From Glycera tridactyla (Eukaryota), in NCBI GenBank assembly GCA_965644265.1, contig OZ286464.1:98518001-98582000 (forward strand): DNA of 64,000 nucleotides. The letters run 5' to 3'. The translations under genes and the position numbers were made by a program. How positions within the stretch are numbered: position 1 is the stretch's first letter; each line of letters begins with the position of its first letter. This document shows, piece after piece, positions 12,545 through 37,019 of this stretch. The notes beneath the pieces are model-generated. The model saw only the letters and a program-made list of their open reading frames with translations. It searched no databases and was not told the origin of the DNA.

Positions 12545-13500
12545 GAATACCCTGGTTGATTCAGGCCAGATCTCTAATTGTTTCCCCATAGCGGCAAAAA
12601 TTCCAATCATTTCTCATTTTCCATCATTAATGAGTAACAATTGAAAATTAATCGATTGGAATATGTCTTTTGGAATCATGTATGGTGGATATGAAAATCA
12701 CAGGCAACGACGTTGCCATTTCACAGAAATTGGCAGATCTGTGAGTGAAAGCTTGTACGAGTTGCAAGCTGATTGGTGTGTATAGGAGGTAACCCAGCAT
12801 CTGGCCATGATCCGGGGCCCCATTCCTGCATACATTTAAACAAATGCTTCTCTCTTCACTTCCATCTAGATACGGCGTCCGTACGAGACTACCATCCAAA
12901 GTATTTTAGATGGTTGGAAAACGGGAGAGTAGTTCCTGCTGATTCCATAAGTTGTGGTCTCAAAGGGGAAGATGGAAAATATGAAAGAAATTGAGTGACG
13001 AGGAAAAAAAACCTCCTGTCAGGCTAAACACGTGGACTGAGTATATCTGTATGGTGTCACGATGTCCCCAGTTAAGCTCATCTACCATGTCAGTTATAAT
13101 GTATTCAAGTCTTTTCAAGGGTTGGAGTGGGCAAATGGTGGTCTCAATTAATTTATCTGGATTTGATCCTGATTTTACCAGTTGCCCGACAGAAATATTC
13201 TCCCTGTCTTGTCCAACAGAGGACAGAATTTACATTTAATGTTGCTACATTTATTGGAATGTTTGCTACATGGGTGGCGGCCTATTTCGAGGCAGATTTG
13301 GGGAACCCTTGCTTTGACCAAGAGATCCCTTAAATGTGGTGCCCTTCTGTTCCCGAAAGTTACTTTAGTTTCTGACATAAGTTTGGTGGCTTGGGCCCTC
13401 TTTAATAGATCCCAATTTTTGCGAATAAAGTTTTCGAAAGCCCACCACCTCTCATGAGTGGATTACAGAAGTGAGCCTTGCTAGATCTGGGCCTGTTATC
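12266..13500 (-). mobile_element. PLE 3' fragment (linker/Cys region, 3' UTR, hammerhead)
   Basis: KVTFGNRRAPHLRDLLVKARVPQIC..HPCSKHSNKCSNIKCKFCPLLDKTG is homologous to 35570-35750. A hammerhead lies at the 3' end. Confidence 0.8.
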
Positions 13501-21639: not shown

Positions 21640-21900
21640 TATAGTGACAGAGAATTTGGACTTGTTGAAGCGCTCTGCGGCCACAAAGATTCTCGAAGAA
21701 TCGATAATCATCATCGGCCACAGAAGACCTCCATATCTCAAGGACATTCTAGTGAGGGCAAGAATCCCCAGGTCGAAAAGAGCGCCAGTCTGAAACCAAG
21801 CAGCAAATACAGGAATTGCTGCATGAATATTTGCTCTCTCTTCAACAAATCTGTCACTTGAAATCATGCATCAAATCCCATTCATCTGGGCGAATTTCAT
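21640..21900 (+). mobile_element. Short PLE linker-region fragment (first duplicate)
   Basis: Plus-frame NLDLLKRSAATKILEESIIIIGHRRPPYLKDILVRARIP matches WDLLKRATATKLLAETRVIFGHR at 35570-35640. Confidence 0.7.
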
Positions 21901-23815: not shown

Positions 23816-23939
23816 TCTTGGAGACACTCTACTAGAGAAGCAACGGATTAGCTCCATCGATGATGTGATAACAAAAACGATCAGATGACTCGAATTTTTT
23901 TTCAGCCATAACATTCTACCCAGGCAAAAATGACCTAAA

Positions 23940-24190
23940 GGATATAGTGACAGAGAATTTGGACTTGTTGAAGCGCTCTGCGGCCACAAAGATTCTCGAA
24001 GAATCGATAATCATCATCGGCCACAGAAGACCTCCATATCTCAAGGACATTCTAGTGAGGGCAAGAATCCCCAGGTCGAAAAGAGCACCAGTCTGAAACC
24101 AAGCAGCAAATACAGGAATCGCTGCATGAATCTTTGCTCTCTCTTCAACAAATCTGTCACTTGAAATCATGCATCAAATCCCATTCATCT
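23940..24190 (+). mobile_element. Short PLE linker-region fragment (second duplicate)
   Basis: Copy of 21640-21900. Confidence 0.7.
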
Positions 24191-28266: not shown

Positions 28267-31200
28267 AGGTTACAGCTGCTGTGGTAGCCCCTCTACCTCT
28301 AGCTCTGCCCCTCCAAGCACTGCCTCTGGACCTTGCTGCTGACTTTACTTGTGACTTAGCGCCACGGAATGACGCAGTATATTTCACTGAGTCTGCTGAC
28401 GCAGCATGACTCTTCAACGCTGCAGACCGTCATGTAAGCTGCATGTTAGCTGCTACCTTCGAGACTATGAAAGTAGCGTGCTCCACTGCTTTCATTCCCA
28501 CATTGATAGAGATCTCTGCCCTTTCAGCCAAGTCCTGGATATCCATGAGATCCTGTTGGGTAGATCAAATACCAGCCCCCAGAGCAATATCTGCATACGA
28601 CAGAACATTGAGAGACTCGCGGAGCATACTCTCCTCTGGGGATGGTTTCAAGTCATTCTTAGAGGTGGTACCAAACTGTGAGTAATCAGCATCAAGAACC
28701 GACGCTTCAACCAAATGACTGTCTGGAACGAACCCAGACTGATGAACCTTATACACCCTCGAATTGCACCCAAACACCTGTGGGAAATTCTGTTTAAAGG
28801 TTCTTGTGAGCCCCTCTGAAACACCCCCTTTCCCTACCACAAATTCAGATAATTCAGCGTCATCCTCTATCAAGGGATGATGTTGTTCTCGGCCCTGAAG
28901 GGATCTATCTAGAAAGGGGAAGAGCATTGTCAATGAGCCTTTCGACCTCTTTGGACCTATGCTCGGCATCAAAGGAAACGTCTCCCACATTCGGGCCTAT
29001 TCCCCACGGATCAAGATGTGTGGGATCCGGCTGATTGCGATAGGTAGGAAGAATTTCAGTGGCAAACCTTCTAAAAGTCTGCATCCTACGCGTCTGTGCA
29101 GGCCTTTCTGCTTCTTCCTCCTCACTTTTACTCACATTAGCTGTCGCTGTTGCCGCAGCTACAGCTTCTTTTGTGGCCTTCAATTCCTGTCTAACTGATT
29201 GAAGCTCTGACCTCATACTTTGTACGAAAGCGAGAGTAGCTGACTCTTCGCCACTTTGACCTCTAGGAGGTACCTGAACCTGTGGCACAGGTGTAGCTCC
29301 AGGTGTAGCTCTAGTTATCTGTGGCTCGATCCGATCAATATCCTCATCATCTGAGGGAGCTACTGACACTGTAGCTGAGGCTTTGGTATTCCTCATCCTA
29401 CTCCACCAGTCTGGTGGTGCTCTTTTCTTGATCCCAGAAGGTGGCCCCACCTGACTAGACTCCCCAGACAACTTCCTCTTTTTGTGAGTCTGCAACTGAG
29501 TAGTATCCTTGGTCCTAATGAGACCATAGTGTACCTCAGAAACCGTCCTCTGTCCCTGCTGTACATTTATCTTCATCGGACCCGCTCTCTCATGCAGCAT
29601 GGACGCTAACCTCTGTGAAGGGTCGTCCTCTGCCCTGGCTTCAGACCCTGATCCGAAAATGGCAGCAGGTAATTTTTCTGGTTCATAGTGACTACTGTCA
29701 TCTGATTCCGGATTCTCGCCACCTTCTGAAGATGACTGAACCACCTCTGGATCACGGTGTACCAACGCCTGGTGTTGGACCTGAACAACACTAGACGTCC
29801 CTTTCAGAAGGCCTGTGCCATAACCATATTTTAAGGACTGAGGATCCCTATGGCCTGTTTCTGATGCCCTGACCGGCGAATAGTCATGACTGGTCAAATC
29901 CCTAACCTGAGTTTCACAGTGATGTCCGGTGCCCCAGACTCTACCCGATGATTGACTTAACTCAGGCTGTTTATGGCTACTCTCTCTAGAGTTGCTGGAT
30001 CCCTGAGCACTGTGTTTGGCCTGTTTATATTCACGTGCACTGGGATTGCTCTCAGAAGACTGCCCTGTGCCCCGTACCTTGTCTGATACATTCCTGTTAC
30101 TGCCAGACCCCGAACGACTCTCAAAAGAGTGCCTGGTGCCAGGTGCCGTCGCTGGAACATGCACAGGGCCCTGAACCTTGGAACTAACCTCAATAGGCTG
30201 CCCCGAGCCTGGTGCCCCGTCAGACACACGCCTGGCGCCCCGAGCCCCAGAACTGCCCTCAATAGAGCGCTCCGAGCCCGGTGCCTCTGCAGAAGCTTGT
30301 CCTGCACCTAGAGCATCAGGACTGCCCTCAATAGAGCGCCCCGTGCCTGGTGCCCCGACAGAAGCTTGTGTGGCACCCTGAGCCCCAGGACCACCCTCAA
30401 TAGAGTGCCCTGTGCCTGGTGCCCTGGCAGAAGCTTGTCCCGCATCAGAACATCAGGATCGCCCTCGATAGAGCGCCCCGTGCCCGGTGCCCTGACCAAA
30501 GCTTTGGCGCCCTGAGCCCCAGGACAACTCTCAAAAGAGTGCCTGGTGCCCGGTGCCCTGCCCTGAGTGAGTTCTGAACTCTGTGACTCTGTCCCAGTGC
30601 CCGGCGCCCGGACAAAATGCCCGGTGCCCGGCAACCTGACAGAGACTTGTTTAGCACCCTCAGCATCCCGGGTACCCTCAACAGAATGCCCTGTGCCTGG
30701 TGCCCTGACAGAACTATGTTTTGAACCTCTAGGTTCCTGGGTATGCCCTGCAGAACTATGCAGAATGTGTTCTGTTTGTTTGGACTTTTTAGAAGGCCGT
30801 GTGTCCTTCTCTGAGTGTTTCTTTCAGTCATAAACAGGAAGACTCTGAGCTGAATTTGTACTTCTCTGCTTTGTAGAAAAACTAGCTGTTTCAAACCCCG
30901 GCTCACTATGCTGGCCTGCCCTCAGTTCAGCCTTAAACACAAGGGAGTCTGAGGCTTGCGATGGACCTAATGGTGGTCTAAAGGACATACCTCCATAAGG
31001 GGTAACTACCAATGTGGCCTGATGCGTCTTCTCTGTGTCTGCGATGGATGACCTACTCACGGAAGATTTCGGTGAAATCTTAGCCCACTTAGTAGAACTC
31101 ACTATCTTTCTACTAGACTGGGCCATGTCTCCTGGCAACTTAAGGATGGGCAACGAAACTCGTGGTGACCTGTTCAGGATCCTATCTGATGCACCCTGAA

Positions 31201-31453: not shown

Positions 31454-32206
31454 GATTCAAACACAATGTGTGTGTAACAACCTTTATTTCTGGTGTGTCA
31501 TAGACCTTTGAGGCCTTGTAAGAGATATGAAAATCACAGACACTCAATGAGCGTCGTTTCAGGGTGTGTGCGTGTAACGTGTGTAAAGATGCAACTCAAT
31601 GAGGTGCCCAGTGACACCCGCCAGGTATCCTGCAGTCCAGTGACAGTCAAATCAGCTGTCAGATCAGCGCTGATCTACAATGCACAATACCTGCGAGTGA
31701 CACAAACAGAGCACGTCAGCGCGAAGAGCGCCGGAGATTACACTGAGTCAACAATTCAGGAGCCTGTGCAGAGCGCAATATGGAGCGCCCGGAGACGCAC
31801 AGGCCTCGTTCGGCGCACTGCCGTTCCGGCAGAACACGCATTGGTAACACGCCGTGTACCGCGCGAGTACTTTCAAACGCTACGAAATGCGCAACGCGTG
31901 ACCGATATGATCTCTAAATTGTAGCGAAAGTACCTCCACACGCGAAACAGATGTGTTAGGCTGAAAATCGTAGATTTTCGACAGGAATTTTCTATCTCAA
32001 AACCTTTACAAATGGCCGAAAAAAGAAAATACGAAGCTCACATGCGCGCAGTCCGCCTAGTTTTTCATAATTGCGGTGGATGGCGGTGTCGCGGCGGCGG
32101 AAGGGTGCATGCCTCTAAATAAATCTTCCATATGTTGGGAAGTTCGGACGTAGGTAGTTGATCATCAGGGATGCAGAATTTGAGGGAGAGACAGGTACGG
32201 TATTTA

Positions 32207-32840
32207 ACTTACTGCGTTATAAGACATGGGCACAGCCCTATGGTCATGACTTTCTGAGTTATAAGACATGGGCACAGCACCATGGTCATGACCTACTGCT
32301 TTATAAGACATGGGCGAAACCCCATGGTCATGACTCACTGCGTCATAAGACATGGGCACAGCCCTATACTCATGACTTACTGCGTTATAAGACATGGGCA
32401 AAGCCCTATACTCATGACTTACTGCATTATGAGACATGGGCACAGCCCTATGGTCATGACTTACTGCGTTATAAGACAAGGGAACAGCCCCATGGTCATG
32501 ACTTACTGCGTTATAAGACATGGGCACAGCCCTATGGTCATGACTTACTGCATTATAAGACATGGGCACAGCCCTATTGTCATGACTTACTACGTTATAA
32601 GACATGGGCAAAGCCCCATGGTCATGACTTACTGCGTTATAAGACATGGGCACAGCTCCATTTTCATGACTTACTGCGTTATAAGACATGGGCAAAGCCC
32701 TATGGTCATGACTTACTGCGTTATAAGACATGGGCACAGCCCTATGGTCATGATTTACTGCGTTATAAGACATGGGCACAGCCCCATTGTCATGACTTAC
32801 TGCATTATGAGACATGGGCACAGCCCTATGGTCATGACTT
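32207..32840. repeat. 42-bp minisatellite, right flank of the DIRS insertion
   Basis: The array resumes in register after the element (ACTTACTGCGTTATAAG). Confidence 0.95.
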
Positions 32841-33163
32841 ATGTTGGATATCTTGTCTGATGTTTCGGATATGTGTTTTGGGTATGAGGCAATGAAGAGT
32901 GAACAGACAAAATATCCCCAATGTTCAAGGTTTGTCCCCTAAATCTGTAGGCCATAGTTACCTGTAATGTGCCTATCTCCAGTTGCAACAGGCAGGTCCT
33001 GCATCTGGTTGGCTGAGCGGCCAGAGGCACACGAGGCCGCAGGCCGAGTGTGCCTCTGGCCGCTCAGTCAACCGAGTTAGGAATAGCAAGCGGATCTCAC
33101 ACCCCAATGTCGTCTCACTTTTCTCCCATGACAAACGTGCTGTTCGTTCACCTGCCACATGCC

Positions 33164-33263: not shown

Positions 33264-33649
33264 CCGTCGTCGTTGTCATGTGTGTCACCATAGCAACGAT
33301 TGTATCAGCATGAGTGACGTGACGTCACAATGCAATGGATGCACCGGCGGCCAGGAGTTTGAGATTCATGTAATCTCACAACCCCCAATCTCACACTCAA
33401 AATGACACAGGCATGGGAGAATGGGCATAATTTAGCCTTCACTGTGAGGTTTTTGGATTGCTTGAATCCAGTTACAAGTTTTATTCCAGAGAGCTCTTTG
33501 GTGGTGGAGCACCTTTGGATAACGCCGAAGAAATATATATACGTTTTTACAGAATAAAAGTGTGGATACCTTCAAAAATATATGCTTGTCTTATTTTGAT
33601 ATGTTCAGAACAGATCTTAAAAATGTCATTGCCACTTTGAACTTTTTTT

Positions 33650-36600
33650 CCAGGGGAATAGTCAACCTCTCAAGCTTCGCTTTGAAAGACCATCACAAAT
33701 CACTTTTAGAAAAAGGTCTCACATTTTGCCCGACCCCCGGGGAACTGGTAATGGGAGATCTCACAGAAATTTTAGGCTTAAAGCATTTTTTGACAAAGGT
33801 CAAGACAAAAGCGAAGCTTAGAAGAAACTACTAAGGGAAATCGTTCTTGAAGTCAGTCGTTGACCTTGGACAATATGCCACGAATCATACAACCACGACC
33901 AATTTCATTGATTCCTTTTGAACATAATGATTTTGCTCATAAATCTACTTGGCAACTCGATAACAGCCCTTCGGCTCTTGAAAGTATGATCATGGTCAAT
34001 GAGCTTAAACTTGCAAAATTTAAGTGTACCACCCTTTTAGGACAATAGAGAACTATTCTAATCACTCCTGTTGACATGATAAACTATGTGATATTTGTCT
34101 ACTAACTATTTTTTGTACGCTACTAACCGTGTTTGATTGACTTTGTATAAACGCTGCTCTGGAGAAGGTTGTCTATTGGTAGACAGCTAATTGTAAACAT
34201 TGTTTCAAAAAAAAGTTTTTTATTCTGATCTATTCTATTCAAAATCCGAACGTCAAGGTGTTCAGAACTCAGGTCTGATCCTTCAATTATCAAAAAGAAG
34301 GCAGACAAGGGCTCCAGTATAGTCATCATAAATCAAGAAGACTACATGGAAGAAGGCTACTGCCAATTGTCGGCTGGTAAGTTCTATGTGAGAACCACTG
34401 AAAACCTAACAGAGGTACACAACCAGAGAGTGAAATCCATTGTGAATGAACTTGAAGAGAATGGTGAAATTGGACCCAAGGCCAGTGAATATCTCGTATT
34501 CAATGACCCGAGAATTGCCCAGTTTTATCTTCTTCCAAAAATTCACGAACACCTTGGTTGTCCCTCTGGACGCCCAATAGCCTTGGCTAATGTATGCCCC
34601 ACAGAGAGAATTTCAGCATTTGTAGATTTTTTCTTAAAACCATTTATGCCGAAAATAAAGTCTTTCCTCAGGGACACCACTGATTTTCTTCTGGAAATAG
34701 ATTATATGGGAAAAGTCCCGGCAGGTAGCATCTTGGCAACTCTGGATGTAACCAGCCTTTATACCAATATCCCAACTGATGAAGGAATTGAGAGTGTACG
34801 CAGGTTTCTGTCCATCCACAGGAGTACCCCAGGTAACCCGTCCAACGACACATTGTGCCACCTCCTGGAAACTACATTGAAATGTAATAATTTCCAGTTC
34901 AATGAAGAAATTTTCTTGCAGGTGGGGGCACAGCAATGGGCACTAGAGTAGCGACAAGCCTTGTGAATATTTTTATGGCAGATTTTGAGAAACACCATGT
35001 ATACTCACAAAAGTCACAACCAATATTGTACAAAGTGTTTTTGGAAGACATAATTATGATCTGGACCAAAGGGGCAGACGAATTTGACAAATTTGTCAAC
35101 TCACTCAATCAGTGCCACCCAACCATTGAATTCACATTGGAACAATCAACCTCAAACATGAATTTTCTGGACACCACGCTACAACTGGACCTGGATGAAG
35201 CACTGTGGACGGACCTGTACTGCAAACCTACAGACAGCCACTCATACCTGCACAACACATCTGCACACCCACCACACAATAAAATGGGGGTACCTTATAA
35301 CTGCTGCAGGTTAGACGCATTTGCATTAGAAATAGTGATTTTGTCAAACATAGCACAGTTCTGATGTGCCATTCCATGAGAGGCTTCCCAATGGATATTC
35401 TCAAAGAGGCACTTATGAAGACTTCAGGGAGGGTCCAAATGGACCACCTGAACGAACACCGGTTGAAGAGTCTAGATACAATGTCAGATAAAGATGACAC
35501 AGATGATATCTTTCTGATAACGACCTTCAACTCCAACTCCACATGCATACAGAGTCTGATCAAATCACACTGGGATCTCCTAAAAAGAGCAACAGCAACC
35601 AAGCTCTTAGCAGAGACCAGAGTGATTTTTGGTCATAGAGGAAGAGTACCACAAATCTGTCCAGAAAAAGGGAAACATCCATGTGGCAAACACATCAATA
35701 TGTGTAGCAACATAAAACGTAGATTTTGCCCACTTTTAGACCACTGGGCGGGAATATGATGCCAAATGGAATATTACATGCCAAAGCAGTGATCTCATTT
35801 ACTGTATTACATGTAAATCATTCTCCAAACAGTATGTAGGGCAAACAGGGAACAGCATACACTAACGTTTTGGAGCACACTCAGGGGCCATAGGCGGGAA
35901 AAATATGGCAGAAGATGTCAGCTGACATTTTTTGTCCAAAAGACCACCGTGGCCTCAGAGACTTGAAAATTCATGTGGTTGATTTTATCTATGCCCACCC
36001 AAAATGGGAGCACAGCGTCACACTAAGACTCCAGATAGAATTCAACTGGATTCATAGATTGAGGACCATGCTCCCACTCAGGCTCAATATCAAGGATAGA
36101 ACCCCCTTGAAAAAGGATGCCGAAATTGGAGGTTTTACCGTAAAAATGGGAAAATAAAGTCAAAAGGGAAACCAAGATGAACTCTCCAGGACACCTTTCA
36201 AGCCCACCAAGGGATCCCCAAGCCCTCCAGGGCACTACCATGAATATGTAAAAATTTAGGATGACTTTTTTCTATATATACTTTCTATATATATTTTTGA
36301 GAAGCTTGCTTGGCCTGTCACTTGCCTCATTATATAATCTCCTCATAATTACTGACAGACCCATCTGGCTGACCAATATATCCAAGTCCTCCATCTCCCC
36401 TGGTAGTCTGTAAACCTACACTGAAATTCAGGGACACAAGGTGCGACAGACATTCTCCACGAACGTCATGCATTGAAGAAATTTCGATAAACTTATTTAT
36501 TTAGTTCAACTAAATTTACTCACAACTGAGGGGAGAAGCCAGTATCATATACACAGTAACTCACCAGCTCAGAAGACTCACCAGGTTAGAATATTGTCAA

Positions 36601-36966
36601 TTTTCAAATCTACAGCCATTGGCTGGAATAAATGGGGATAATGAATGAAACTGCCAATTATCCCATGATAATCCAGCATAAATTGATTATTTAATTATTT
36701 TGGCAACTGATGAGGCCTATATGGCCGAAACTCGGATTAACTAGAACCTGTTGCACATCTCAGGATCTGGTATAGCAGTTGTGCCTAAAAATGGACAAGG
36801 CCATCTGCTGGGATGTCAAAAAGCATTTAGTTGCACAAAGATCCACTAGATGGCGTCAAAGATTGTTTTGATGCCACTGCCCAGCGACAAAATGCGACAT
36901 CGTCTATGACGTCATGACGTCCGTTCATGACTTCAATCCGAGTCTTGCCGTAACAGAGAGAGGAGG
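33650..36966 (+). mobile_element. Near-full-length degenerate PLE (Neptune-like): RT, Cys linker, GIY-YIG, 3' UTR with hammerhead
   Basis: IVNLSS..LLEKGLTFCPTP, IIKKADKGSSIVI, FYLLPKIH..GRPI, LDVTSLYTNIP, AMGTRVATSLVNIFM, TDLYCKPTDSHSYLH, CITCKSFSKQYVGQTG and NWIHRLRTMLPLRLN. Many frameshifts and stops. Confidence 0.93.
36701..36950 (+). ncRNA. Discontinuous type I hammerhead ribozyme, copy C
   Basis: TGGCAA-CTGATGA(36707-36713)-GGCC TATAT GGCC-GAAA-CTCGGATT ... 196 nt ... AATCCGA-GTC(36942-36944)-TTGCCG. Stem I is 5 bp plus a G-U pair, stem II 4 bp and stem III 9 bp. Confidence 0.85.
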
Positions 36967-37019
36967 TGCGTGCCTCATCCTCTTCATACATGTATGAATA
37001 TGTGTATATATGTATGTAT

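Follow-up and report, generated by a model that had tools for sequence, protein, structure and literature searches.

Hammerhead ribozymes of metazoan Penelope-like elements (PLEs) have been described as minimal type I motifs, which either lack helix III or have a palindromic helix III of 1-2 bp, and which act as dimers with low activity (Cervera & de la Pena 2014, PMC4209133; Lunse et al. 2017, cited in PMC6765202; PMC7761336). Their role has been called a mystery (PMC7761336). Endonuclease-deficient, telomere-associated PLEs of fungi and protists carry type I hammerheads with a large, contiguous helix III hairpin that are active as monomers, and no insert of about 200 nt is described for them (PMC4209133). 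A discontinuous hammerhead, described as the first split hammerhead, is found in rodent Clec2 3' UTRs, where enzyme and substrate segments sit on one transcript separated by hundreds of nucleotides (Martick et al. 2008; summarized in PMC2920678). In Clec2 the substrate strand reportedly comes first, the long spacer reportedly closes stem I, and the stem I/II tertiary contacts are reportedly kept. Craig et al. (2021, PMC8557442) tried relaxed descriptors with longer loops and annotated "HHR_core" and "HHR_half_core" elements in the 3' UTRs of Naiad PLEs. These hold a hammerhead catalytic core that fits no stem/loop descriptor, with half-cores 35-50 nt apart; the authors report no distal partner and conclude that Naiads lack canonical hammerheads. 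Finally, HDV-like ribozymes process the 5' ends of the non-LTR retrotransposons R2, RTE and L1Tc (PMC6765202, PMC7761336).

We analyzed a 64,000-nt stretch of the Glycera tridactyla contig OZ286464.1 (GCA_965644265.1, positions 98,518,001 to 98,582,000; hereafter the window), for which a preliminary description had proposed a discontinuous hammerhead with an insert of about 200 nt in stem III, located at the 3' end of a PLE. The sequence contains every proposed element at the stated coordinates, and the observation is thus confirmed. An intact core pairs with a distal segment to give an 8-bp stem III plus the A15.1-U16.1 pair, a GUC triplet in register and a 6-bp stem I. Stem I is open, stem II is a closed hairpin and stem III is closed by a 196-nt loop, a type I connectivity, and neither a cleavage triplet nor a stem I partner is found next to GAAA. 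We located two more diverged full copies and one 5'-truncated copy in the window. The features are as follows.

36701-36738 (+): copy 1, enzyme half
36701-36706 (+): copy 1, stem I 5' strand, UGGCAA
36707-36713 (+): copy 1, core strand CUGAUGA
36714-36726 (+): copy 1, 4-bp stem II hairpin, GGCC-UAUAU-GGCC
36727-36730 (+): copy 1, core strand GAAA
36731-36738 (+): copy 1, stem III 5' strand, CUCGGAUU
36739-36934 (+): copy 1, loop III insert of 196 nt, predicted to fold as a closed multibranch domain, with TGACGTCA at 36907-36914, a second TGACGT at 36915 and CCACTAGATGGCG at 36843-36855
36935-36950 (+): copy 1, substrate half
36935-36942 (+): copy 1, stem III 3' strand, AAUCCGAG
36943-36944 (+): copy 1, U16.1 and C17, predicted cleavage after 36944
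36945-36950 (+): copy 1, stem I 3' strand, UUGCCG
36951-36968 (+): sequence after the ribozyme motif still shared with copy 4, the PLE "tail"
33562-36157 (+): decayed reverse transcriptase (RT) plus C-terminal GIY-YIG coding region of the PLE that carries copy 1, with several frames broken by stops or frameshifts
12266-12544 (-): copy 2, full split hammerhead motif, stem I of 6 bp, stem III of 10 bp, loop III of 221 nt, predicted cleavage after 12272
13196-13438 (-): RT-EN linker remnant of the PLE that carries copy 2
5739-5990 (+): copy 3, full split hammerhead motif, stem I GGUAA/UUACC, stem II GG(A)UC-AUA-GACC, stem III of 6 bp, loop III of 203 nt, predicted cleavage after 5984, followed by a 19-nt tail and then (TC)n from about 6004
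3842-4925 (+): RT and GIY-YIG remnants, with a CX5CxxC linker, of the PLE that carries copy 3
2359-2540 (-): copy 4, 5'-truncated insertion that keeps only part of the insert, the substrate half (AAUCCGAG-UC-UUGCC, 2392-2378) and 20 nt (2377-2358) beyond the stem I strand UUGCC (25 nt past the predicted cleavage site), up to a masked run

We next asked whether the arrangement could arise by chance. A descriptor requiring stem II of at least 3 bp, stem III of at least 5 bp, stem I of at least 4 bp, U followed by H, and a loop of up to 450 nt found exactly two sites in the window, copies 1 and 2, whereas 200 Markov-shuffled windows gave a mean of 0.015 hits and a maximum of 1. Copy 3 has a bulged stem II and was recovered once a bulge was allowed. 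The inserts of the three full copies have largely diverged, yet the core is kept and the stems show compensatory changes. Compared with copy 1, U-A changes to C-G and G-C to G-U in stem III of copy 2, and A-U changes to G-U in its stem I; in copy 3, C-G changes to U-A in both stem I and stem II. Rfam models returned no hammerhead in the window at gathering score, nor in the 33-42-kb region at E up to 10, which is expected because the models cannot span a 200-nt loop III, and which confirms the proposal that a local search would miss the motif.

An unconstrained minimum free energy (MFE) fold of 36696-36955 gives stems I, II and III as proposed, at -92 kcal/mol with z = -5.2, and the fold of copy 2 likewise reproduces the three stems (z = -2.0). 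In copy 3 (5940-5955), the TGACGTCA motif is followed by UCAG, giving UCAUCAG, which is complementary to CUGAUGA; the MFE uses this pairing instead of the ribozyme fold, which lies 6.5 kcal/mol higher, and it may represent an inactive alternative conformer.

Each full copy lies 0.5-0.9 kb downstream of broken RT and GIY-YIG coding remnants on the same strand. The broken window ORFs gave no Pfam hits on their own, and a word-index protein search with the endonuclease piece returned only one uninformative 663-nt contig. The 201-amino acid RT piece, however, has 8640 homologues in the representative library searched, and the window pieces align to full-length homologues that carry RVT_1 followed by a C-terminal GIY-YIG domain. 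A CX5CxxC motif just before the endonuclease is intact in window copy 3 (CKYRKCRFC) and in all four full-length homologues aligned, whereas its middle cysteine is replaced in copy 1. This zinc-finger-like linker (CX2-5CxxC) is given as a Neptune/Nematis trait tied to microsatellite targeting (PMC8557442), and indeed (TC)n follows copy 3 and an AG-rich run follows copies 1 and 4. We provisionally call the elements Neptune-like PLEs. We found no upstream repeat for copy 1, as there is no similarity between 33.2-33.6 kb and 36.7-36.95 kb. Another GIY-YIG fragment (37131-37319; 46% identical to that of copy 3) starts about 190 nt after the copy 1 motif on the same strand; no hammerhead core was found in the sequence after it, and it is probably a decayed or nested PLE fragment. 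Further fragments lie at 7413-7655, 21641-21831 and 23878-24027. A near-perfect 32-bp hairpin at 33007-33073 (arms 91% complementary, 3-nt loop), with a weak sub-threshold mir-9256 match on both strands, lies just upstream of a (TG)n run and the 5' region of the copy 1 element. The window also contains large minisatellite arrays at 41860-43808, 32123-32962, 45155-46000 and 30034-30717, with periods of 55, 42, 42 and 69 nt, respectively, and inverted repeats link 43.7-44.0 kb with 45.2-45.5 kb.

To assess conservation, we inspected the loci of 12 related proteins from other public assemblies (43-54% identity over the RT piece; loci are numbered with the prefix L). Seven of them (L008, L009, L010, L013, L016, L017 and L019) show the same split layout 0.3-0.9 kb after the ORF. 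Their stem sequences are unrelated to those of the window, with stem III starting CUGCC, CCGCGAU, CUGUG, CCGCU, CCGCUU, CCGUUC or CCGUC, and in every case the complementary strand, a U-H and the stem I complement lie 181-230 nt downstream. One relative (L011/L012; 46% identity) carries exactly the published contiguous PLE form, with a short quasi-palindromic helix III (UACGGACUGUA), in both repeats (L012:20-68 and 4655-4703; L011:4599-4647), and thus both architectures occur among close relatives. L014, L015, L018 and L020 gave no split ribozyme motif, but three of them have only about 200-300 nt of 3' flank; L018 has about 1.1 kb. L020, a PLE from a coral metagenome, has a good hammerhead core with a 5-bp stem II about 350 nt upstream of its ORF (L020:214-250), without a convincing substrate partner within 900 nt. 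A metagenome pattern scan for the core plus the stem III start returned seven GC-rich contigs with no distal partner, which are unrelated. In L008, L010, L011, L012, L013, L014 and L019 a separate ORF1 (190-580 amino acids, no Pfam hit on record) lies directly before the RT/EN ORF.

Pair counts were made on the anchored halves of the ten examples (three full window copies and seven loci), because the inserts cannot be aligned between families. Stem III pairs 1-5 are paired in 50 of 50 cells and stem I pairs 1-3 in 30 of 30, with 2-4 pair types per position. CUGAUGA is present in nine of ten examples and CUGAAGA in one, and GAAA is present in all. Stem II is 4-6 bp in nine of ten examples and weak in L009, which has a U-U at its base. 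The triplets are GUC (seven), GUA (two) and GUU (one), always directly after the stem III 3' strand and before the stem I 3' strand. For each example, shuffling the downstream 700 nt gave a partner at least as good with p between 0 and 0.0115. Each enzyme half fits its own or a close relative's substrate half, with a mean of 11.2 bp for own and 3.7 bp for other partners. The fold required for catalysis equals the MFE in five of ten examples, and stem III has a probability of at least 0.85 in seven of ten. Stem I is only 3-6 bp long (3 bp in L010 and L016), the sequence beyond it shows no conserved pairing or bulge, and we identified no partner for loop II, which often contains UAUA.

The preliminary description had placed the predicted cleavage at the element boundary, and this is not supported. 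Copies 1 and 4 (36765-36968 against 2540-2359) remain alignable for 25 nt past the site, until a masked run, and copy 3 has 19 nt before its (TC)n flank. Masked runs at 12115-12245 and 1751-2357 begin about 25-27 nt after the predicted sites of copies 2 and 4, and the 3' ends of these insertions therefore cannot be read. The shared sequence matches the 30-40-bp tail of PLE insertions (PMC8557442), which in the Anolis element corresponds to the stretch between two internal reverse-transcription start sites (PMC11167929). L013 and L019 are perfect head-to-tail arrays with units of 6241 and 5995 nt and one ribozyme motif per unit, in which the predicted cut lies 77 and 91 nt upstream of the ORF1 start codon, at the junction between one unit's 3' UTR and the next unit's 5' UTR. 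The tandem arrangement, the 5'-truncated copy 4, the tail and the microsatellite-like runs next to the insertions are all in line with the known traits of PLEs. The interpretation offered in the preliminary description is thus partly supported: a discontinuous type I hammerhead in the 3' region of PLEs, with covarying stems I and III and a fold that needs no second copy, holds up, as does its account of the published dimeric forms, but the boundary claim does not.

The insert has a strikingly constant length (181-230 nt) despite no alignable sequence between families. The palindrome TGACGTCA lies inside loop III in seven of ten examples (half-sites in L016 and L017, none in L009) and nowhere else in the fetched loci, and CACGTG occurs in the inserts of L013, L017 and L019. 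In L012, with its contiguous ribozyme motif, the same two motifs lie just upstream of the whole motif. PLE repeats hold the internal promoter (PMC6765202), and we therefore read the insert as the promoter module, enclosed by the ribozyme motif in this lineage, an inference that rests on motif content only. GTGACGTGACGTCAC at 33311-33330, about 240 nt upstream of the first ORF piece of copy 1, is a second cAMP-response-element-like site at the 5' side of the element, although this region shows no similarity to the 3' ribozyme region. Six TGACGTCA sites spaced exactly 85 nt apart at 47119-47551 indicate a tandem repeat that carries this motif. CCACTAGATGG(C/T)G, present in the inserts of copies 1 (36843-36855) and 2 (about 12366-12378, minus strand), with CCACTAG only in copies 3 and 4, resembles the CTCF-binding consensus; it is conserved among otherwise diverged inserts of the window family and absent from the inserts of the other loci.

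We consider it likely that this is a genuine, conserved hammerhead motif of type I connectivity, in which helix III is closed by a module of about 200 nt. It belongs to the 3' UTR/pseudo-LTR of a Neptune-like subgroup of PLEs with a C-terminal GIY-YIG domain. In this view, the enzyme strand is transcribed first, the insert then folds on itself, and the substrate strand follows and completes the three-way junction in cis. Our analysis establishes the conserved core, the covarying long-range stems, the constant insert size, the position relative to the ORFs and the thermodynamic support. Catalysis itself is inferred: the RNA would self-cleave after H17 as a monomer, probably slowly, given the short stem I and the lack of an evident stem I/loop II contact, and activity at cellular Mg2+ may therefore be low, as reported for other PLE hammerheads (PMC4209133). 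It is likewise inferred that in tandem or read-through transcripts the cut would free a unit RNA whose 5' end lies 77-91 nt upstream of ORF1, that the insert is the internal promoter, such that RNAs started inside it would lack the enzyme strand at their 5' end and could be cut only in the downstream repeat, and that reverse transcription must start on RNA that is uncut at the site, or longer than one unit, because genomic copies include the tail. For the one PLE studied biochemically, ribozyme mutants did not affect insertion in vitro and no RNA-seq reads ended at the cut site (PMC11167929), and a processing role is therefore not established for PLEs in general.

These Anolis data, the location of the motif just upstream of where inserted copies end, and the weak stem I of several examples would also fit a three-way junction conserved as a recognition or template-positioning structure for the PLE reverse transcriptase, a 3' UTR handle for target-primed reverse transcription in which catalysis is irrelevant or vestigial. 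We regard this as unlikely, because all 11 catalytic core positions, the A15.1-U16.1 pair and an allowed N-U-H triplet are kept in families whose stems have completely diverged, the pattern expected from selection for cleavage rather than for shape alone. The halves could instead act mainly in trans, as in the dimeric PLE hammerheads or as proposed for Clec2 substrates lacking an enzyme strand; truncated copies such as copy 4 carry only the substrate half, and within a family enzyme halves fit the substrate halves of other copies (12-14 bp between window copies 1-3). Yet the halves are always on the same strand, in the same order and 181-230 nt apart, the insert is predicted to close on itself and bring them together, and an intramolecular reaction is strongly favored over one between 3-6-kb units, which makes a mainly trans reaction very doubtful. 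PLEs keep introns in their repeats, and the Drosophila virilis Penelope repeat has an intron that abuts helix I of its hammerhead (PMC4209133), but removal of the insert as a spliceosomal intron to create a compact hammerhead is highly improbable here: none of the ten inserts has both GT near its start and AG near its end, and splicing would not need the long complementary stem III strands. Hammerhead-like strings do occur by chance in large genomes (PMC3088659), but a chance match is ruled out by the shuffled-window expectation and by ten independent examples with full covariation.

The motif shares its host element class, its place in the terminal repeat or 3' UTR, its type I connectivity, its core and a short stem I without evident loop-loop contact with the minimal metazoan PLE hammerheads, but helix III is 5-10 bp and is predicted to form in cis across 181-230 nt, such that one copy would suffice, and the published descriptors and Rfam do not find it. 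Like the fungal and protist forms, it has a stable helix III predicted to work as a single motif, but one that spans an insert. As in Clec2, a host gene feature, the enzyme and substrate segments sit on one transcript, widely separated, in a 3' UTR, but the order of the strands is the reverse of that reported for Clec2 and the spacer closes stem III rather than, as reported, stem I; the present motif is multi-copy, resides in a retrotransposon and lacks evident tertiary contacts. Its location just upstream of the first ORF in L013 and L019 parallels the HDV-like ribozymes of non-LTR retrotransposons, from which it differs in ribozyme and retrotransposon class, with a processing role only inferred here. 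In the papers searched, split or discontinuous hammerheads led only to Clec2, and full-text searches on hammerheads in PLEs returned no description of this layout, although an earlier description cannot be fully excluded.

A more speculative model, which we consider possible but rather unlikely, is that the promoter inside loop III makes cleavage depend on where transcription started. RNA begun at the element's own promoter would carry only the substrate strand at its 5' end and escape 5' cutting, and the complete ribozyme in the downstream repeat would cut and set a poly(A)-independent 3' end, giving a terminally redundant RNA, whereas read-through or multimeric RNA would be cut at every unit. 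As a corollary, PLE clades now described as lacking hammerheads or as having only a core (Naiads) may carry the same split form, and the hammerhead would then be universal in PLEs.

A long-range form in a widespread PLE subgroup, monomer-capable by its predicted fold, changes the picture of animal PLE hammerheads as minimal motifs that can cut only as dimers. It gives a second natural class of discontinuous hammerhead, with a topology opposite to that reported for Clec2, shows that descriptor and covariance-model censuses undercount hammerheads, and suggests re-examining elements reported as ribozyme-free. The conserved size of the insert and its transcription-factor-like palindromes suggest that promoter and ribozyme are interleaved, a testable way to couple transcription start choice to RNA processing in a retrotransposon.
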